The notes beneath the pieces are model-generated. The model searched no databases, was not told where the DNA came from, and saw nothing but the letters and a program-made list of their open reading frames with translations. Made by a program: the position numbers and the translations under genes. DNA of 64,000 bases, taken from Zygnema circumcarinatum SAG 698-1b. Its lineage: Eukaryota; Plantae; Zygnematophyceae. Positions 47,439 to 64,000 of this stretch are shown here, one piece after another; positions within the stretch are counted from its first letter, which is position 1; the number at the start of each line of letters is the position of its first letter. The stretch covers positions 3,100,001 to 3,164,000 of the forward strand of contig CM074813.1 of the NCBI GenBank assembly GCA_037447605.1, in the 5' to 3' direction.

Positions 47439-50089
47439 TCAGTCCCCCTGCACGAAGCGCGCGAGCTGCATCTCCTGCTCCGCCATGGCCGCGAGCTCCG
47501 GGCGGCCGGCCCGCCTATACGCGCGCGAGAGCGTGCGGAAGGTCGTGGCGGTCGGCGCGACGCCCCGCGCCCTCATGCGCCGGAACATGCGCGTCACGCC
47601 GTCCACGAGCCCGGCCATGCCGTACACGCTCATCATCGTCGTGTACGTCACCTGCCGGCACGCACACGCACACGCCATGCTTCAACACATGGCATCACAT
47701 ACACATCACATCACATGGCATCACATGGCATCACATGGTATGACATGACATGAAGTTGCATGCCAATGACAGACATCCTGACTGATGTTATAAGGCATGG
47801 CCTGATGGCATGGCGGCATGGTGGCATGAGGGATGACGTGACATAGCAGGACAAAAAGGGATGCTTCTACCATGCCAAGGCCTTAACAACCCTAGATAGC
47901 TCACATTTCACATTTCACATTCTCGCCATTCATCTGAACCTACCACGTCTGCTCGCAGCCCTTCTTTTTCAAGAGACATGAAAAGCTTGATGGCTTCGTC
48001 AACTCTTGTAGCTCGCCCGTGGGCCAAAATCATCGCATTGAATGCGTGCAAGTCGGGGCGAATTCCTTTCGCCCTTACGTGGTTCCACAGCTTCACCGCT
48101 TCCTCATGCCGCCCCTCGCGACTGTGCAGAGCGATCATCGTTGTCACTGAATGCATGTCACGCGAAGATTGGCCGAGATTCGGCGATGAGACAGCTGGCA
48201 GCAAATGGTTGAAAGCTTCGGAAAGCTGTCCTGTCTTCATTAATGCAGTGGCCATTCTGTACACCAAGGCAGACGACAACAGTTAATAAAGAGAAGCAAG
48301 CAGAGCTATACTGAACAAACTCACTCTTTCATGTGACAATTTACGGTTTAACGGTAGAGAGTTGTGCCGCAACTCACCTGTTGTGCGTGGATAGATCCGG
48401 CACGAGGCCTTTTGCTTTCATCTCTTCGTGAATTTCAGCCACCTCGTCTGAGCGTCCTAGTTGGCTGTAAACCGCAATTAGGCGATTGAATGAAGCCACG
48501 TCATTCAAAACTTCCGATGATCTCAACTCCTTGGCAACTTCCAATGCCTGCCCGGACCTGCCGGCATCCAGATAGATCTTCATCATGAGGCAATACGTTG
48601 CTGAATTTCTCCTCCCTTGCATTGTGCGATACAACTGGGAAGCTTTGAAAACTTTCGACCTGCCCGCTCTCCCATACACCTCCAGCATTGTGTTCCATGT
48701 CATAGTATCTAAAGCTCCGTTCTTTTCCCTCACCTCCTTGAAAAACGCTTCCGCCTCCATTAACCTTCCCATTTTACCAAACATTTTTATAACAGATGTC
48801 GCGATAACAGAATTGATTTTTTCCCCATTTTCTTCCATTTCTCTCAAAACACCCATTACCCCCTGTACATCCTTTTCCCTCCCGAGAGCCTCCACCAGCA
48901 TCCCCCTCGCCACCATGTCCGCCTTCACACCCGCAGCCCTCATCTCAACCAAAGTTTCTTTGAGCTGCCCCGTTTCGCCTGCCCGAGCCCTCGCTGCCGC
49001 GAGAGCGCACCAAATTCTGACATCTGGCACGAACCCCATCGCCCTCATATCGTCCAAAGCTATGCTCGCCTCCTCCAACATCCTCCCCTGTATACATGAT
49101 CTAATCACTATGGAAAAAAGCTCACGGTCAGGTAAGAAAAAACTTTTTGGTTCCTCCCCTTCCTGCCCGATTGAGTCCTCCATGGGATGTTTCTGCTTCC
49201 ACTTCCCTCTAAACTTTCTCGTCTCTTCAAAGGCGGCCCAAACATTTTCTCTTTCTGCCCGACCCGCCAACACTCTCAAATTTTGCTTAAAGGCAATCAA
49301 AGAATCGAGGTCTTCTCGACGATCCAGATTCCGTTGAGATGACGTTGCCGCCTTGGTCTGATTGTCACGTGGCACTCCCTTAGAGGTCGAAAGCTCATCG
49401 GAGGAAATAGTACTTTCTTCGACAGAGCCTCGCAGCTCTGAATCTCCATGATTTGTATCACAGCTAGTGCTATGAATTTCTGAATTGGTGCAGTCATCAT
49501 TAGCTAATATTCGGATCTGCTCTGGTTCGGAAAATTGTTGAATTCCTAGGCGGCTTGAAGAATCTCTCCCGCATTCGTCTGAATGAAATTTGGGCGAGTC
49601 CTTGTACAAAAGCAGTGATAATATCGCAGCGGGGTGGGAATTCGGAGTCACGGACATGCGTTTCCATGTTGCAGTTACAAGTTGATCTTCAGGAACGGTG
49701 AAATGAACGGATTTACTATCAGAGACGTCGCCTTTCTGTTTCGCAAAGAGCCCAACACGAAAAGGAGAAAATTACAGGATGTAAAATTCTTCAATTTCAA
49801 ATTGAATAGAAAGACCTCATCCGTGCGCTCTAATCCTTAAGCCCCTCACATTTATCGCAGCACATGCGAAGCCCAAGATTCTAAGCCTCACGATGCATGA
49901 GTTTCTAATCATAAAGTTAATTAATTTAAACCCTCAACCTGAATTCTTTAAAGAGACGGGAGCAGTCATACCCTGAACCTTCCACGCACATTTGATCCGC
50001 TCCCTGCCACCGCAAACTGCCCTCCAGAAGCGTCCATACAACTGCTCCGTCCCGGAGTTTTCCCCACCGCCATGGTCGCTCTCCGCCAT
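47439..50089 (-). CDS. P-class pentatricopeptide repeat protein; start may be 50191
   Basis: Exons ~50089-49979, ~49735-48378, 48256-47944, 47651-47439. Tandem 35-aa PPR motifs, e.g. PDVRIWCALAAARARAGE...EMRAAGVKAD, DTMTWNTMLEVYGRAG, PDLHAFNAMILAHGRATRVDEA, VTYTTMMSVYGMAGLVD. Confidence 0.92.
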
Positions 50090-55200: not shown

Positions 55201-56524
55201 ATGCGAACATGCGGGAGCTGGCGAGCACCGGCTGGATGTCAAATCGGGGACGGCAGGTACACGCCAGCTCCTCTCGAAAAGGAAGAAAGGGGGAGACAAA
55301 GCAAAACTTGTGATGTTTTGCTTTGTTATTCTTGTATTGTTCATGGAAACGCAACGCAAAGGAGGAAAACATGGAAGACTCGAAGCGCAGGCAGCAGGGA
55401 AAGATGGAGAAACAGGGGCGAAATTTGAAGTTTCGAGGATAGTCAGCCTTTTTTTTTTTTACCGCACTTCAGGAGTACATGAAGGATGTACTAATCACCC
55501 ATGAGCATAAATAGGCTTTTTTTTTCATGTTCAGAATCAACAGTGTCTTCCTTCCCTCGTCGCTTTACTTGTCTTTATTTCTTTTCTTAACGTCCATTTT
55601 GTTTTGTTTGAAACTTATGGTGATGGCGCAGATCGTGTGCTCGTTCCTCGTGCGCGACCTGGGGCTCGACTGGCGGCTCGGCGGCGAGTGGTTCGAGAGC
55701 CTCCTCCTCGACTACGACCCCGCCTCCAACTACGGCAACTGGACCTACGGCGCAGGTACACGGGGCGCAGGGCTCAGGGCCAAGGGCTCAGCGGGGCGGG
55801 CTTTGGGGAACACAAGGGAGGGAGGGAGGGCTGAGGGGCGGACGGAGACGGGCGGGCGCAGGAGTGGGCATGGACCCTCGGGAAGATCGATATTTCAGCA
55901 TCCCGAAACAGGTACAGCTGGCGCACTCTGGTTGGTTGAGGTTTGGGCCATGTGCTCCACGCGCGACGGATAGCAGGAAGAGAGGGCTGACGTGGCATAG
56001 GGACCTCGGTCAAACTCTTACTTCGTTGTTGTCGGTACAATTAGATTATTATTATTCGCGTCATGCTACATGTTTGTGCTATTTTTAGGCTACATTATGA
56101 CTGTTGCAAATGGTGTTTTCCGTCTGTCGAGGGTCAGGCTCAAAGCTACGACGCGGACGGGGAATATGTGGCGCATTGGATCCCTGAGCTGAAGAAGCTT
56201 CCCCCGAAGCTGCGGCATTTCCCGCACTCGCTGTCTCCCTCGGAGAAGTCCCTCCATGGCTGGTCGCTGCAGGAGGGGTACCCGAGTCCGATAGTGCAGC
56301 TCAAGTTTGGGGCTCCTAAGGGGGGGGGAGGGGGAGGGCGCGGAGGATACAGCGGTGGCGGGAGAGGGGGAGGAGATAGAGGGAGAGGGCGAGGGAGATG
56401 GAGTGCTAGCGGGAGAGTAGAGAGAGAAGGGGACGTGCAAGGAGAGTCGAGCGACGGTAGAGGGAATGGCGGGAGAGGTACACGGACATGGCGAGGTGGA
56501 GCGGGGCAGTCGGTCAAATTTTGA
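52016..56524 (+). CDS. CRY-DASH: Cryptochrome-DASH (CRY3-like), 13 recognised exons; upstream targeting exon(s) possible (frame open from 51950)
   Basis: Exons 52016-52208, 52463-52602, 52847-53068, 53307-53450, 53571-53648, 53808-53924, 54382-54428, 54558-54634, 54824-54905, 55187-55256, 55632-55755, 55862-55911, 56138-56524. DASH motifs [95 protein letters not shown]. Confidence 0.97.
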
Positions 56525-56559
56525 GATGTGTAAGTTCATTGTGTAACGGTTTTAGAAGC

Positions 56560-58050
56560 AGCGAGGCTGTGAACATATATATATGCATTGACGGCTGTGG
56601 GCGTGCCGTTGACCCGAGCAGTCGCGTCGCCTTGCCCTGCGCCGCCCGCGGGCCGCCTGCCTGGCTCAGCTCGCGTTCTCGCGTTCTCGCGTTCTCGAAT
56701 TCTGCCGCGCGTCGCCCTCAACGGGCGGGCGGAGCCGCAAGATCTTGCAGACGGCCTGTCAGGATTCGGCCACGTCAGGGGCCCGCTGCGGGGGTACGAA
56801 CGTGCCACGTCAGCGAGCAGGCGAGGCCACGTGGCGCGGCGGCGACGAGGACAGGCGGAGGGCGCCCGCGTCCGGTCCGTTCCCTTCACCTCAGCGGCCA
56901 TTCTTCTCGAGACGCCGCCCAACGCGACCGACTCGCAGCAATTGGGGAGGGGGTGCGCAGCAAACAATCGTACAATATTTGACGACCGTGTTTCAAAATA
57001 TCTACCTTTCGATGCGATCTGTGTGTGCAACTTCCAGCAATTCCCGAACTCTAAGTATGCAATTTTTTAGGCCGACTTCTCTCTTATCCTGCAAATTGCC
57101 TCGCAATCTTGCTCTGCAGTCGATTTATCACCCCCACTCTACAATTCTCCTCAAGCCTGAGATGCAGACCGCTCGCATCCTCCGCTCCCATCTGCTGCCA
57201 TACTTCGTGAATCCTGCCTCGCCTGCTGCCACTCCAGAGCCGCACGCACGTCCGTACGCTGCTGCTCCTTCCGACGGTCCTTTCCTTCACCTTATGTTGG
57301 CCAAGACACCAAGTCCGTGTTCGTCCGCCCCTGCAGGCCGCCCTCCAGAGAGAGACGCCCCACCCCCAGCCCCGCCCAACCCACTCCCGGCCGACAGCCT
57401 CTTCCACGGCGCGCCTCTCGCACGCGCGAGATAGCTGCTGCTGACGCGTGCCTGCTTACACGCACACGTCATTGCGTCACAGTACGGTACGGTACGATAG
57501 GGTAAGGCGCCGTACAGAGACCGGCTCCGTCCGTACACTTCCCATTCGGGCATCGCTCTCAACGCGAAACTGGGCGCATGGAAACTGCGCATCGGTATCT
57601 CGCGGCCACGTGGCGGGCATCCTGCATTCCCTCGTCCACGTGGCATGCACTGAGTGGGCATGTGATGACGTGGCGGTCCACTCTGAACCCCCACTTCCCC
57701 CCCCCCCCCCCACTCCCCGGGGTGCGAATCGCGGGCGAGCAAATATGCCATCCGTTGACGGCCGGGCGGGCGGGCAGGCGGTCGGTTCGTGGCGGCGGCC
57801 GGCCCACGCGGCCCCCCCGGGCGGGGGGAGGGCGGGAGGGACGTGGCCAGGGCGGGGCCGCGCCCGCGAGGCGAGAAAGCCCGCCGGGCGACGCTGTGCG
57901 ACGCGTGCGACAGCACTGAGGACCAATCCTCGGCCAGGCGGACGTCGCACACTCACCCGCCCACTGCAGGTTGTGGCCGCCGTACTGTGCGTCCGTCCGT
58001 CCGTTTGTCCGTCCGTTTGTCCCTCCGTCCGTCCGTCCGGCGCCGCCAGC
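56560..58050 (+). promoter_or_regulatory. GC-rich island upstream of the ferroportin gene
   Basis: GCCACGTG at 56826 and 57605, TCCACGTGG at ~57635, GTACGGTACGGTAC at 57482-57495, CCAAT at 57923. Confidence 0.5.
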
Positions 58051-58051
58051 C

Positions 58052-61000
58052 ATGGCAGTGGCGGGCAGACAGAGCGCGGCGCGGCACTACAAGGGTGCGC
58101 CCCCGCCTGCCAGCGCCCGCAGCCGGATGACTCTGGCTCTGGCTCTGGCTCTGGCTCTGGCTGCCCGCCGACGGTATCTTTTACCTCTTTGTTCAGTGAA
58201 GCCTACTGGCGTGTCGAGTAGGGGAGATTCCAAAGTGACTCCTTTTGCGTGCAAGGCTTGCAATGAATGGCCTTAGGGCTGGAGGATTGACGAACTTCTT
58301 GGAAGGAACCGCCAGGGTTTCCAGTAAGTGTGTAGCAAGCGAGACGTCTAGCATTCAAACTGGGAAGGAGTTTCGGAGCAGGCAGCGTTATGAAGGGGAA
58401 CTTCTGCAGTACCCCTCTGCGGCGCTTCCTGGCCCTGGAGGAGCAAGGCTTAGGGCTGCGGAGTCAAGTAGGAAAGGAGACGAGCACCTGCAGCTCGGAA
58501 GGAAATTGAGCGAACTTCACTTGAAAACAGAGAAGAGAGTGAGGAAACGAAAGTGTTACTTGTAAGGCCTCCAAGATTTGATTCATGAAGCAATCAAACG
58601 GAAATTTCAAGGAACTCTTGTTTCACAAGAATTCTGTTGGTTTCTTGCTCGAGAATCTACTTGATGTTAACTTCGCTGAAGCTGATTGTGTTGTGTTGTC
58701 GCGACTTGAATGGTTGTGGTTTGTAGAGGGGCTGCCGAGGTACAAAAATTCGATGACAGTTGTAGCTCTTCAAATCGGGCATTCTTCGATGACGAGTCCG
58801 TTTTACCAAGAAGAGGCGCTTCTAGTAATGTGTCGGTCACATCCGCTCCTCACTCGAACTCAGAAGTCTATGATGAGGGTGAAATACCTGCAAGCCAAGG
58901 CAGGGAGGAGTCAGCAGAGTGCGCAAGGAGTGGCAATCCTGAAAGTACTTCACAGCACAGCGATGCGCATTTGCTGAGCCTGCAGGTTTGCTCCAAACAG
59001 CTGCACAGTGAAAACCCAGAAGGAGAGATGAAAACTACGGCCTTGCTGGTCGGCTTCTTTTAGGCTTGGGAAGCGCTTTTGTTCGTCTTGTTTGAAACGA
59101 ATCTTGACTTTTTATCGACCTGTATTTTTAAATTTCTTCTGTGAAGCGTGCAGGTCCAGTCCAGGGAGGAACAGGAGCGTTTAGCAGCCACACCTGCGCA
59201 TCCTAACGGCCTTTTTGGTAAGCCTATCATCTTTTTTTTTTCTAAAACATCTTCCCCCCGACAATTTGCTAGATTGGTGAGCTGTGTCAGTCTAAATGGA
59301 ATTCAAATCAAGGGCGTTTATCACTGACAGAACCACAATTCGGCGAGAAGGACAAGCGACCTGAAACTTAGTCATGTGAGCGGGAATGTTTAGTTGGCAC
59401 CACACAGTGATGGAAGGGTGAAGAAGTGAGACTTTGGTTCACTGATGATTCTGCGGATGGCTGTCGTTGTTGCGGTTCGGTGTATGTCACCAGCAATGAA
59501 TGCAAGCTACTTCGCGTCGTGCTTTATCGAGAAGATTTGGCGCTTTGCCTTACCTGCGATTCTCTCTCTCCTGCACGATAGCCTTCTGCCAGTGGCTGTG
59601 CTCAGCTTTGCCAGCCAGGTAATTCAGCTCCGCTGTGACTGCGCTTGACTCTGAGGGAGCTCACTACTTCCCCTTGTTGGCTGCTGTTTTTCCGATGCAT
59701 CAACCCGTGAACCAGCCCTTTATGGGAGCTATTTTTGCAACTGCTTTGTGGAGCATACCTGGCGATTTGCATGCCCTGCGATTCTTGCTCTTCTTCATCA
59801 TAGCCTTCTTCCTGTCGCTGTTGCCAGCTTCACTGGCCAGGTAGGTGCTGCTGCCTACCAAGAGGTCGAAGGGCCCTTCGAGAGCTTTGAATTGAAACGT
59901 GGATTGAGATGTTCTGTAGAAACGTCCACTGTTGGTGTGTTCATTTTGTAATGTTGTACACAATTGAAGTGCTTGAATTTTTTGTTGCTGAGTGTGTTTG
60001 TTGAAAGGGTACTCCGGGGAACTGTTTTTGCAATCTGACAGTGGTTTTGTGTGGAGTTGCAGCTTGTTATCTTTGCAGGTGGACCGTGGGTAGGAGAGGT
60101 CATGGATATGGCGCCTAGGGTTTTAGCGTTCAATGTACTCAGTGCTGTGCAGGTGGGCAGTCGTCTACAAATAATTTCCCATAGAGAAAGCAAACTCGAG
60201 AAAAGGGATTCGAACCCTTAGAAATAAATGATATGGACACAGCGGTCTATCATGAGGATGGATGAAGTTGAGTCCGTTGTGAGTTTGGAGTTGATTGTGA
60301 GACGCAAATTACTTTGGTGATTTAAATAATCTACTGTTTCATTGCAACAGACAGCTGAGGACTAGTCAATTTGTTGGTTCCCTGATCCTTCGCCTATTGT
60401 AGGACTGCGATTTGAAGTAGAACGGCAGACTCACTATGCTTTTGTTTGCAACAGGCTGCTGCTATGCTAATCTCGGCAGGAGTGACTGTATATGCACTCA
60501 AATCGGGTGTAACAGCAGGCGCATCGGCCATGAGTATGTTCAGGCAACCATGGTTTCTCGTCCTCATTGTTGCGGGAGCAGTGGAAAGGTTGACTGGTCT
60601 CGCTTCTGGGGTAGCGTTTGAACGAGACTGGGTTGTTCAGGTACACCCTCGAACGGTGCAGAAGTTGAACAATTTTTTTTAGACATAATTGAAATTAAAG
60701 CAAATATGAGTAAATTTTGCTCAACTGGTTGGTGTTGACATAAATAGTTTTATGGATGAAAACCTGTGTGTCTGCTGGATGTGTAGGGTTGTGCAGGCCT
60801 TAGAGGATGTTGGAGTGATTAGTTTAATTCAAGAAGTATTGAATGACGACTACCATAGATAGACTCCGCAGGACTGCAGTGAAAACATCCTTGGTTTAGG
60901 TGATTGAAAATATCGCTGATGCTGATTTGTTTGTACGTTGTTTTGGGCCTTTCCTGCAGTTGGCTGGGCCGAACAGGCCTTTAGCTTTAGCCAAGGCGAA

Positions 61001-63304
61001 TGCTACTCTTCGTAGGGTTGATCTCTTTTGCGAAGTAAGTCGAATATTTGAGCATTTCTGATTGTCGGCAGGTCGATTTCCAACTTCTGGCCATGTTGCA
61101 GTCGAATTTCACAAACTAGCTGCTTATAATTTTCAATGGTGGAATGGGGCCTTGGAACTGTGGATTTTGCTCTGTATTTGCGTAAATCTTGATGTAAACT
61201 AATAGTTTTGTGGAATCTGTGCGTTTATGTTGCAGATTTCAGGCCCTCTTGTATTTGGATGGCTCTTATCAAACTATTCTATAGTTCATTGCATTAACAT
61301 TGCTGTGGGTATTATGGTTGTGTCTCTGCCAATCTTGGTATGTTCGTACCTCTTCTACCATCATCGCTATAACCATGTTTCTTTGCCGTCTTTTGTAGCA
61401 GGATGTTTAGAAGGGTAACTCAGCTGATCAATGTCTTCAGAGGAATTCTGAAACGCGTTAGCCACAATTAATCTCCTGTCCTGTGTCGTCTTTTCTGCCA
61501 GATGTCCTTGGTGAAGCTGACAGATGTCTTATCCAGTGGTGTACTTAAACGTCCTCGACATGGACGCAGTGCTACAGGGGGCCCGCAAGGGGAGAAAGGC
61601 CATCAAGATGAGCAAAGTATGTCATGTTGCACGATCAAGATACGGATGTGTGAATTGCTATGAGGTTCCTTTTATGATTAGAGTAGAACTGCGTGACTAC
61701 GACAGCTGAATCCGCTTGAAGATGGGGAAAGGGGCTGTGATTTCCATCGACTTTCTTAAGTTGAAAACTACAGTCCATACTAGTACTGAATAGGTTGTCC
61801 CGGAAGACATCCATTGCCCCAGTTTCAAGATACTCATGCGGCTCGTATACAAAGTTTGTTTTATCTCTGTAGAGGCTTGCATGAATGTGTCTCTGAGCTC
61901 CACATCTTGTGTCGTCTCTGCTTCTTGCAGAAGTGCCCGGAGGGTTTGCAGCTGCTGCAAAGGGTTGGAAGCAGTACTTGGCTCAGCCTGTACTCCCAGC
62001 CAGCGTTGCCTATGTGCTTCTCTACTTCAATGCTGTCTTATCGCCTGGGGGACTCATGACTTCTTTTTTGACGCAGAGAGGTGTGCGCCTTGTCGTTACC
62101 TTTCTGCTTCCTTTCGTCCTTCCTTCCTCCTTACTGCCTACTCTTGAAGCACTTTGAAGCATTATCTCACGCAGTAAAGGACACCAGGGGTATCCCTAAA
62201 TTTTCTGCTCTTATTGAAAGGGAAAAATAAATTTCATTGCGTTGGACCCTTGGCAGGGTTGGATGTATCAATCATTGGAGTCTTTCGGGGAGCCTGTGCT
62301 GCTATGGGGTTCTTGGCAACTTTTCTATCGGCTCCTTTGATCGCTCGTTTAGGATTGCTGAAGGTAAGTCGTTCTCGAAATGCGCTACGTTTCTTAGTTG
62401 TCAGAGGTGCTGTTTTGGTCTCGATGGAGTGAAAGGGTACAGATAAGACAGCAGATTGTTACAGGTGGGTTCCAGCTCTCGCGTCAATCCTTGCATAAGT
62501 CATTATGTTATATTGTACACAGCTGGCAAACAGTTTGTAAGTCGATTTTTCAAACTGAAACCACATCGGATGTGTACTTAAGCTGCTAATCTGCATGTCT
62601 CATAATAGTGTGGGAGACGGCGCCATGTGACGGAGGTTATGCTCGAACTGATGTGGACATATTGATGCCGTTTGAATGCTGATGATCTGCAGGCTGGAGG
62701 AGCAGCTTTAGCCTTCCAAGCTGTGGTGCTCGTGACCTCGATTTTTGTCTACTTGGTCTCTCCTCCCGGCCATTATGTGGCCCTTCTGCTCTTTTTGGGT
62801 CTTGTGGTGAGCGCTTCTATCCGCAATAACCCTGATTGTTCGCCTTTTTTTGGGTAGAATTGGGGCTTTCAACTGCTATCAAATTCCGAAATGTTTTCCT
62901 GTTAGGGCCGTCGCTGCCGATCCAAAAGGGTGCGTTCTGTACTGCAGGTGCTATCTCGTCTGGGCCAATGGACGTATGACGTTGTGGACGCCCAAATCTT
63001 TCAGACTGCCATCCCCGCCTCGCAGGCCAACTTGGTCGGCACCACCGAGATCGCTCTCGGCAGTTTAACGGAGCTCATCATGCTGGGTGTGGCTATCGTC
63101 ATGCATGACGTCAGCCACTTTGGCAGCCTGGCCATCGTGTCGGTGTCCTCGGTGTTGGGGGCGGCGGCCATCTACTGGCACTGGCTCATGACGCCCAACG
63201 CCGACCAGCGCCGCCTGTTTCCAAACGAGCCGCACTTCAGGCGGGGGATGGACCGCATAGAGCCCGGCCTGCAGCCGCTGGTGCCGGCAGTCACGGGCAC
63301 TTGA
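58052..63304 (+). CDS. Plastid-type ferroportin (SLC40A; IREG3/MAR1/FPN3-like) with an N-terminal extension and two alternative copies of the TM1-TM2 exon
   Basis: Exons include [17 protein letters not shown] (~59153-59217), alternative exons 59494-59618 and 59716-59840, [15 protein letters not shown] (60063-60152), [83 protein letters not shown]. Stop at 63304. Confidence 0.95.
59494..59618 (+). CDS. Ferroportin alternative exon A (125 nt, phase 1 to 0)
   Basis: cag|CAATG...AGCCAG|gtaatt; encodes (A)[41 protein letters not shown]. Confidence 0.85.
59716..59840 (+). CDS. Ferroportin alternative exon B (125 nt, phase 1 to 0)
   Basis: cag|CCCTT...GGCCAG|gtaggt; encodes (A)[41 protein letters not shown]. 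Confidence 0.85.
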
Positions 63305-64000
63305 GAGTAACTTTAGGGTACCTCCCTTGTGAATAATTTCGTCCACTTAGTTAAATGATTGCACCCACGATTGTTTGGTTTTGGGTAGTCTGTTTCCCAT
63401 TTTTTTTTTGTGGGAGTGCATCTTGCAAAGCGAGGTACGTCCAAGAATTTGTCCCGGTGAGGTTTTCGTGGGGCAGGTCAGATGTCTTTGCTGAATATAG
63501 GAAGGAAGTTTGAAATTAGATGCAGGCCAGCATTCAGTTGAAATGTATGCTAGTCTTTTTTTCCCAGCTTAAGCTCTAGTTCTGTACACAGCGCAGCCGA
63601 ATCTAAGAGTATCAGGGTGAGGATAAAACCAACGCATTGTTTGTTGCCCAAAGTTGAGTGCGGTAGTGTGTTGGGGAAAGGGGGGGGGGGGGGGGGGGGG
63701 GGGGGNNNNNNNNNNTGCGTGTTGCACACCTTGCTCTTGCTCTGGAGGGGGGGCGGCTGTGCGCTCCCAACCAAATAGTGGCTTCTAAATGTTGCCTAAA
63801 AACGTAGAGCTCGTTCGCGTGTACTACTGTACCCCGATCCGACCCGAAGTTTAGGGTCGATGAAAGATGGTTGCTTCAGCGCTCGCCGGAGTCTGCGATC
63901 GTGCAAAGAGGGACATGGGAACTCGCAAACTGCAAGGCGTAAGCATGTGTGAGGTTGTGAACCTCTAGTACGCTACAGCACATGACATGAAGACACCCTT

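Follow-up and report, generated by a model that had tools for sequence, protein, structure and literature searches.

Mutually exclusive exons exchange the first transmembrane helix of an FPN3-type ferroportin in Zygnema circumcarinatum, with a counterpart exon pair in mosses

Introduction

Pairs of homologous exons that are spliced in a mutually exclusive manner and swap membrane segments are known from animals, as in exons 3A/3B of SLC25A3 and exons 8/8a of CACNA1C. Such splicing is rarely reported in plants (PMC3923563), a statement of the Kassiopeia paper that agrees with what an earlier reading of the present DNA, made from its letters alone (the sequence-only reading), had stated. Among the ferroportins, Arabidopsis FPN3 was reported to export iron and to be targeted to chloroplasts as well as mitochondria (bioRxiv 10.1101/2020.07.15.203646), and in human ferroportin the metal site S1 comprises D39 and H43, while W42 is critical for export (PMC12594662). 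Here, we analyzed a stretch of 64,000 nucleotides (nt) from Zygnema circumcarinatum SAG 698-1b (contig CM074813.1, positions 3,100,001 to 3,164,000; the whole stretch is referred to as the window, and coordinates are those of the window unless a locus is named), in which an FPN3-type ferroportin gene carries two tandem 125-nt exons, A and B, for the first transmembrane helix (TM1) and the beginning of TM2. With a probability of roughly 80%, we consider them to be a true mutually exclusive exon pair of an organellar ferroportin, which originated by tandem duplication, yields two full-length transporters differing only in this segment, and is shared with mosses.

The locus resembles the animal pairs and the exons covered by the Kassiopeia/WebScipio criteria (PMC3923563) in that its exons are tandem duplicates of equal length and phase with clear similarity, of which one is included at a time, inclusion of both or neither shifting the frame; it differs from the animal pairs in belonging to the green lineage and in that no competing RNA structure was found here. 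With Arabidopsis FPN3/IREG3/MAR1 it shares the subfamily, the Pfam FPN1 domain, a long N-terminal extension, and a Glu at the D39 position. Seed-plant FPN3, represented by a Euphorbia locus, has the same 125-nt exon at the same position in the gene, but there it is single and belongs to a third type (E-Q-x-W-N-F). Human SLC40A1 (8dl6, 6w4s, and 8bzy) is likewise a 12-TM ferroportin within the major facilitator superfamily (MFS) with an acidic residue and a Trp in TM1 (D39/W42, corresponding to Glu13/Trp16 of the exon), yet its H43 aligns with Arg (His in the Sphagnum-like exon B) and its C326/H507 tentatively with Gly/Met, and FPN3 is an organelle protein without hepcidin control. We know of no mutually exclusive TM1 exons for SLC40A1, and none were reported in the literature searched, which likewise described no alternative TM1 for FPN3; a full-text literature search revealed no paper linking mutually exclusive splicing to FPN3, IREG3, or MAR1. 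Mutually exclusive splicing and ferroportins are each known; the conserved exon pair in FPN3 is new.

Exons A and B are included one at a time

RNA data were taken as Logan contigs of four public runs (X1, X2, X6, and X7) from four different studies, aligned on 58500–63450. The types of these runs are tool guesses only ("RNA?" or "?"); as GT..AG joints were found at every predicted intron, the runs contain spliced RNA. In the whole gene model that follows from the joints, the ATG stands at 58263 and the stop codon at 63302–63304, with 13 coding exons for a protein of about 680 amino acids (aa). Its features are as follows.

58263..58561, + strand: coding exon 1, with the first in-frame ATG and the start of the extension of about 206 aa that precedes TM1; from the open reading frame (ORF) and its frame, and the joint 58561 to 58727 in 4/4 runs; without a Pfam match
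58727..58985, + strand: coding exon 2 (N-terminal extension); GT..AG joints in 4/4 runs
59154..59217, + strand: constitutive upstream exon, ending in phase 1; RNA joints, 81% identity to its Ceratodon counterpart
59218..59493, + strand: intron preceding exon A, 276 nt; joint 59217 to 59494 in X2 and X6
59494..59618, + strand: exon A, 125 nt, A-type TM1, loop, and TM2 start, motif I-E-K-I-W-R-F; RNA joints, Pfam, orthologous A exons in Ceratodon and Sphagnum-like loci
59619..59715, + strand: A–B intron, 97 nt; no A-to-B joint in any run
59716..59840, + strand: exon B, 125 nt, B-type TM1, loop, and TM2 start, motif V-E-H-T-W-R-F, His-His loop; RNA joints, Pfam, orthologous B exons in mosses
59841..60062, + strand: intron following exon B, 222 nt; joint 59840 to 60063 in 4/4 runs, joint 59618 to 60063 in X2 and X6
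60063..60152, + strand: constitutive downstream exon (LVIFAGGPW..., remainder of TM2), which holds the premature stop of the A+B form
60455–60640, 60960–61034, 61236–61337, 61502–61616, 61931–62080, 62257–62363, 62693–62806, and 62948–63304 (with the stop codon), + strand: the eight remaining coding exons; all joints GT..AG in 4/4 runs

The depths of the joints around the exon pair were as follows.

Upstream exon (59217) to exon B (59716): X1 334, X2 121, X6 140, X7 264
Exon B (59840) to downstream exon (60063): X1 460, X2 121, X6 170, X7 264
Upstream exon (59217) to exon A (59494): X1 none, X2 107.5, X6 188.2, X7 none
Exon A (59618) to downstream exon (60063): X1 none, X2 101.7, X6 126.8, X7 none
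Exon A (59618) to exon B (59716): none in X1, X2, X6, or X7
Upstream exon (59217) to downstream exon (60063), skipping both: none in X1, X2, X6, or X7

Both joints of exon B were present in all four runs (depths 120–460) and both joints of exon A in two of the four, at a depth about equal to that of B, while neither the A-to-B nor the skip-both joint was seen among the assembled contigs of the four runs, contigs of a kind that drops rare variants. In X1 and X7, the contig leading from exon B into the downstream exon is unbranched through the whole of that exon (side of 90), so the A-to-downstream joint is absent from these two assemblies and the A form is at most rare there; in the same runs, exon A was seen in unspliced contigs only. 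The share of A across the four runs consequently extends from undetected to about half, and B appears to be the default form, with A accounting for about half of the transcripts in some samples. These joints confirm the mutually exclusive use of A and B at the RNA level. The junction mapping had been proposed by the sequence-only reading, which would have been contradicted by the splicing of only one exon, the other lacking conservation, or by a dominance of A+B transcripts; both exons were found spliced in, and the A+B joint was absent from these contigs.

Three further observations concern the splicing of this gene. An unspliced contig of X1 (59188–59744) comprises the end of the upstream exon, the intron, exon A, the A–B intron, and the start of exon B at a depth of 101, compared with 334 for the upstream-to-B joint, and retention of the other introns of the gene in X1 is far lower than that of this region. 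One unspliced contig of X7 stops exactly at the end of exon A. A minor alternative donor, 33 nt past the main donor at 61034, was seen in X1 only (61067–61232, depth 2).

The two exons are old, in-frame alternatives

Exons A and B enter in phase 1 and leave in phase 0, and each forms 42 stop-free codons together with the G supplied by the upstream exon, which ends at 59217. Their acceptors read ...caccag/CAATGA (A) and ...aaccag/CCCTTT (B) and their donors AGCCAG/gtaatt (A) and GGCCAG/gtaggt (B). The copies are identical at 28 of 42 residues and 85 of 125 nucleotides, with 11, 6, and 23 differences at the first, second, and third codon positions, respectively. A Nei-Gojobori comparison of the two window exons gave a nonsynonymous divergence (dN) of 0.25, a synonymous divergence (dS) of about 1.6, which is near saturation, and a dN/dS of 0.15; on account of these values, the copies are old, and purifying selection has maintained both. 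A comparison of the introns on either side of A and B showed no similarity, and conservation is thus confined to the exon. Either exon alone keeps the frame into LVIFAGGPW (60063), whereas the A+B and skip-both forms are frame shifted and encounter a stop in or just after exon 60063–60152, many junctions before the end. Exon B encodes three Cys and three His, and exon A one of each.

The sequence check and the translation of the splice forms bore out the anatomy described in the sequence-only reading, namely the equal 125-nt lengths, AG/GT borders, identical phases, lack of stops, and 28/42 identities, as well as its claims that a single exon is in frame while both or neither are not and that copy B holds two extra Cys and two extra His. 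The dN/dS of 0.15 between A and B is also far from the value near 1 that this reading had associated with a copy lacking conservation.

According to the mechanism that we propose, an ancestral 125-nt exon encoding most of TM1, the TM1–TM2 loop, and the first 11 residues of TM2 would have been duplicated in tandem, and each mature mRNA would keep exactly one copy, thereby giving rise to two full-length transporters.

Assignment of the gene to the FPN3-type ferroportins

The Pfam family FPN1 (PF06963) was matched by exons 60455–60640 (E 2e-9), 61931–62080 (E 9e-14), and 62948–63304 (E 9e-17), and exons A and B each matched its positions 7/8–45/46 with 22.5 and 22.7 bits, respectively. A profile search with the last exon and a protein search with an orthologue both returned "solute carrier family 40 member 3, chloroplastic" as the best named relatives, and the window protein is 55–63% identical to the member-3 proteins of mosses, Selaginella, and Ginkgo. 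Judged by these relatives and by the approximately 206 aa that precede TM1, the gene is assigned as a SLC40A3/FPN3/IREG3/MAR1-type ferroportin, which agrees with the plastid-type ferroportin proposed earlier, the nearest named relatives being "chloroplastic" and the N-terminal extension being present. Organelle location and iron export are known for Arabidopsis FPN3 only and are presumed here from the subfamily.

The exchanged segment carries the conserved acidic residue of TM1

Alignment of a full-length moss orthologue to the solved structures of human ferroportin (8dl6 and 6w4s, E ~3e-19) located the exon within the transporter, while a PDB search with the 41-aa exon alone returned no match. 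In the alignment to 8dl6, exon residues Glu13, 14, Trp16, and Arg17 correspond to human D39, R40, W42, and H43, respectively. Glu13 and Trp16 are invariant in 15 exon peptides, and the Glu of FPN3 was previously equated with human Asp39 (bioRxiv 10.1101/2020.07.15.203646). An AlphaFold model was obtained with a 36-sequence alignment for the B-type Physcomitrium orthologue P0149, which stands in for the window protein at 62–64% identity (predicted template modeling score 0.71; predicted local distance difference test score ~95 in the exon region). It displays 12 long helices with TM7 in three pieces, in agreement with the 12-TM MFS fold with a broken TM7. TM1 spans residues 142–173 of the model, the loop 174–177, and TM2 178–204, with the exon at 147–188; exon residues 1–27 are therefore predicted to lie in TM1, residues 28–31 in the TM1–TM2 loop, and residues 32–42 at the start of TM2 (its first 11 residues).

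The alignment and the model support the TM1–TM2 placement given by the sequence-only reading and its view that the acidic residue kept in both copies (IEKIWRF and VEHTWRF, Glu13) is the counterpart of D39. Its suggestion that TM1 also carries the H43-equivalent metal residue did not hold, as this position is Arg17 in both window exons and the His of site S1 is not kept. Opposite the S2 ligands C326 and H507, the orthologue has Gly and Met, a tentative match given the low identity of the alignment; if the loss of S2 holds, TM1 would be the main conserved metal site. A separate observation concerns the Sphagnum-like exon B (L009:2999-3123 and L012:2999-3123), which has a His at the H43 position (E-H-T-W-H-F), whereas all other A and B exons have Arg.

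The conserved differences between A and B are concentrated near the invariant Glu-x-x-Trp core of TM1 and within the loop. Beside the Glu, A carries a basic residue, as do human ferroportin and the outgroups, whereas B carries a His and, in addition, the His-His loop. Since isoform-specific residues flank the Glu that corresponds to human D39, it is probable that the TM1 (S1-like) site of the two isoforms is not alike in how it binds metal, couples to protons, or responds to pH. Given that His can be titrated and is able to coordinate metal, the most likely effect would be a change in the affinity or selectivity for metal, in proton coupling, or in the response to pH. Of the differences suggested by the sequence-only reading (metal affinity, substrate range, or redox sensitivity), a redox role seems less likely because the two extra Cys of window B are not conserved in mosses.

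The exon pair is shared with mosses

At the Ceratodon purpureus locus (L003), an A-like exon is followed by a B-like exon, each of 125 nt with the same borders and separated by a 69-nt intron. The same A-then-B layout, with introns of 95 or 87 nt, was found in the Sphagnum-like metagenome contigs L009–L012, whose A peptide is that of Sphagnum magellanicum. A transcript-like contig (L008), with 98–99% identity to L012, leads from the upstream exon straight into B, leaving out A. Annotated proteins are of the A type in Sphagnum (P0150) and Ceratodon (P0145) and of the B type in Physcomitrium, and between Ceratodon and the Sphagnum-like loci the dN/dS is 0.18 for A and 0.08 for B. These ratios, together with that between A and B in the window, indicate that the exon pair is held by purifying selection. 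A single exon is present at the equivalent site in Marchantia, Closterium NIES-68, Euphorbia peplus, and contig L013, and among annotated proteins the A-like type is the only one in Selaginella and ferns. A protein search restricted to the B-type segment, a query of few words, returned five moss proteins only.

Seven exon residues separate all A from all B exons of the window, Ceratodon, and the Sphagnum-like loci.

Residue 2: M in A, L in B
Residue 4: A or P in A, G in B
Residue 12: I or M in A, V in B
Residue 14: K or R in A, H in B
Residue 15: I or V in A, T in B
Residue 20: L in A, C or W in B
Residue 29: D or K in A, H in B

The conserved B-specific features are accordingly the His residues at positions 14 and 29; moss B exons have one Cys, and the two extra Cys of window B are peculiar to this organism.

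A public Ceratodon protein, P0148 (528 aa, with the locus tag of P0145, L003:2721-3014), was considered as an annotated B isoform and rejected, as its reading frame opens at an ATG within exon A that is out of frame and continues across the retained A–B intron of 69 nt into B; because it spans a retained intron, this model is not a clean B mRNA. In Closterium sp. NIES-64 (L002:3027-4200), there is one B-like exon, behind which its 3' half, together with the donor, recurs in a tandem array of four partial copies (period 132–150 nt, 97–98% identity), and the downstream exon is present twice. Either a tandem duplication took place recently at this same exon, or the array is an artefact of the assembly.

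In a tree of the 42-residue segments, which offers only these few columns, a B clade comprising window B, moss B, Mesotaenium, Closterium, and the seed-plant type was recovered with support of 95/86, and within it window B groups with the zygnematophytes (93/83); the A-like rows branch near the base of the tree without resolution. Grouping moss A and moss B as one clade was rejected (p of the approximately unbiased test, p-AU, 0.013). At the nucleotide level, window B is 76% identical to Ceratodon B and 61% to Ceratodon A, and window A is 67% identical to Ceratodon A and 69% to Ceratodon B. As the outgroups carry E-R at exon residues 13–14, the A-like state looks ancestral and E-H derived. Because the diagnostic residues, order, and size are shared, and in view of the tree, one old duplication is a better reading of these sequences than two origins. 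A deeper history is put forward tentatively and falls somewhat short of an even chance: the A/B pair may be older than the split of zygnematophytes and land plants and may have persisted as a working switch for about half a billion years here and in mosses, with other lineages having lost one copy, so that seed plants and desmids kept a B-derived exon and liverworts, lycophytes, and ferns an A-like one.

Alternative explanations

Several points weigh against a shared pair of functionally distinct, strictly exclusive exons. Since assembled contigs drop rare variants and only four runs were used, low-level A+B or skip-both transcripts are possible. Each junction contig reaches about 28 nt into the flanking exon, and the full-length isoforms are predictions pieced together from RNA contigs of these runs. 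The 97-nt A–B intron is not clearly too short for splicing. The functional difference is inferred from position alone, and residue 14, being i+1 from the Glu, is not on the Glu face of the helix. Finally, window A and window B as one clade were not rejected (p-AU 0.13, at a cost of 10.3 log-likelihood units), and window A is overall no closer to moss A than to moss B.

The alternative that survives best, although we regard it as unlikely, accepts the exon pair and holds that the isoforms are equal in metal chemistry, differing instead in membrane insertion, in sorting (plastid or mitochondrion, envelope or inner membranes), in stability, or in contact with a partner through TM1 and the lumen-side loop. 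Of the seven diagnostic positions, three are indeed off the site, two where TM1 begins (residues 2 and 4) and one in the loop (residue 29), and helix geometry places residues 14 and 15 off the Glu face. However, the N-terminal presequence is common to both isoforms, the other four diagnostic positions (12, 14, 15, and 20) cluster around the invariant Glu-x-x-Trp core, and in the alignment FPN3 lacks the S2 ligands C326/H507, so that the main site would be the one in TM1.

A lower probability is given to the explanation that the window lineage and the mosses duplicated the exon independently, or that gene conversion has blurred its history, with the A- and B-like features being convergent. The p-AU of 0.13 for a window A + B clade, the near-equal identity of window A to both Ceratodon exons, the 42 columns of the tree, and the Closterium NIES-64 array, which shows an exon prone to fresh tandem duplication, all fit this explanation. 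It must nevertheless account for seven diagnostic residues common by type to the window, Ceratodon, and the Sphagnum-like loci, for the same order, length, and phases, for the closeness of window B to Ceratodon B rather than Ceratodon A, and for the B clade (95/86) and the rejection of a moss A + B clade, and the dS between A and B inside the window is near saturation. We therefore prefer a single old origin of the pair.

It is very improbable that only B is functional and that A is decaying or purely regulatory, its inclusion lowering the output of active transporter. A was undetected as a spliced exon in two of the four runs, with X1 and X7 showing it in unspliced contigs only, but A is in frame and gives a full-length protein, its dN/dS is 0.15–0.18, and its depth equals that of B in X2 and X6; moreover, the full-length proteins annotated for Ceratodon and Sphagnum are of the A type, A-like is the sole type in Selaginella and ferns, and A matches Pfam FPN1 as well as B does. 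The least credible explanation, that the A joints stem from a paralogue, another strain, or a chimeric contig assembly, may draw on the de Bruijn nature of the contigs and the guessed run types but conflicts with the identity of at least 99% of all aligned X2 and X6 contigs with no other letters, the recurrence of both A joints, with depths of 100–190, in two separate studies, the GT..AG joints at predicted exon borders throughout, and the upstream-to-B splice pattern of an unrelated Sphagnum-like transcript.

How exclusivity may be enforced

Exclusion of alpha-tropomyosin exons 2/3 operates through a branch point near the 5' splice site. The same arrangement has been described for OGDH exons 4a/4b (PMC7969005). 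The present pair resembles both in its short intervening introns (97 nt here and 69, 95, and 87 nt in mosses) with the sole yUnAy motifs 30–45 nt from the 5' splice site; it differs in that distance limits have been established for the spliceosomes of animals rather than those of algae or mosses, and that the branch points here are predicted. The 97-nt A–B intron is the shortest in the gene, the others having 141–329 nt, and it contains just two yUnAy branch-like motifs, at distances of 30 and 45 nt from the 5' splice site and with a pyrimidine-rich run behind them. In the corresponding moss introns, the only good motif is CTTAC, 31–43 nt from the 5' splice site, inside the block CTCTCTTAC common to Ceratodon and the Sphagnum-like contigs. 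The window A–B intron gave no alignment to those of mosses. As a side observation, the moss A–B introns (L003:2821-2889, L009:2904-2998, and L012:2912-2998) share the blocks GTACTTT, CCTCTCTCTTAC, and TTTGCGTAGTTCAG despite the deep moss split.

Two other means of enforcement were considered and rejected. Competing RNA structures were not supported: complementary intronic elements were lacking, the search for docking-site/selector pairing yielding no more than two weak inverted repeats, one of 16 nt with 75% and one of 10 nt with 90% complementarity, and the fold of the A–B intron is no more stable than those of its shuffles (z +1.6). Incompatibility of U2 and U12 sites does not apply, with every site being GT..AG with U2-like donors (gtaagc, gtaatt, and gtaggt).

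Exclusivity is most likely enforced in two ways, through the frame and nonsense-mediated decay and through steric hindrance. The frame shift of A+B or skip-both mRNAs leads to an early stop, and because this stop lies many junctions before the end, such mRNAs would be expected targets of nonsense-mediated decay and would probably be removed. In the short A–B intron, the closeness of the candidate branch points to the 5' splice site would probably hinder splicing from A to B.

Significance

Animals provide well-known cases of conserved exclusive exons that alter the working part of a protein; in plants, such exons are regarded as rare. The FPN3 pair is supported by RNA, shared with mosses, and under purifying selection, and it replaces the helix that carries a metal-binding residue of a presumed organelle iron exporter. 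For plant metal biology, it offers a natural pair of variants for probing the residues around the S1 site, and for splicing research a tractable green-lineage case of how exclusivity is enforced and regulated, since genes can be targeted exactly in mosses. Errors of annotation come to light as well, as in the Ceratodon "B" protein model built on a retained intron. If the pair in an alga and in mosses is one old pair, it predates land plants; among the mutually exclusive exon pairs documented for the green lineage, it would then be the oldest, and it would be a natural experiment on the metal/proton site of ferroportin TM1, with Lys/Arg, His, or Gln beside the metal-binding Glu.

Other features of the window

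A long ORF at 48374–49654 on the − strand encodes a pentatricopeptide-repeat protein, whose nearest relative in the protein collection is 55% identical. The ORF at 56063–56524 on the + strand contains a ...WIPELKKLP... stretch and a Gly/Arg-rich tail and presumably resembles a photolyase or cryptochrome at its C-terminus; next to it, at 56500–58200, comes a repeat-like stretch that is very rich in GC. A run of N with poly-G/C lies at about 63650–63700.

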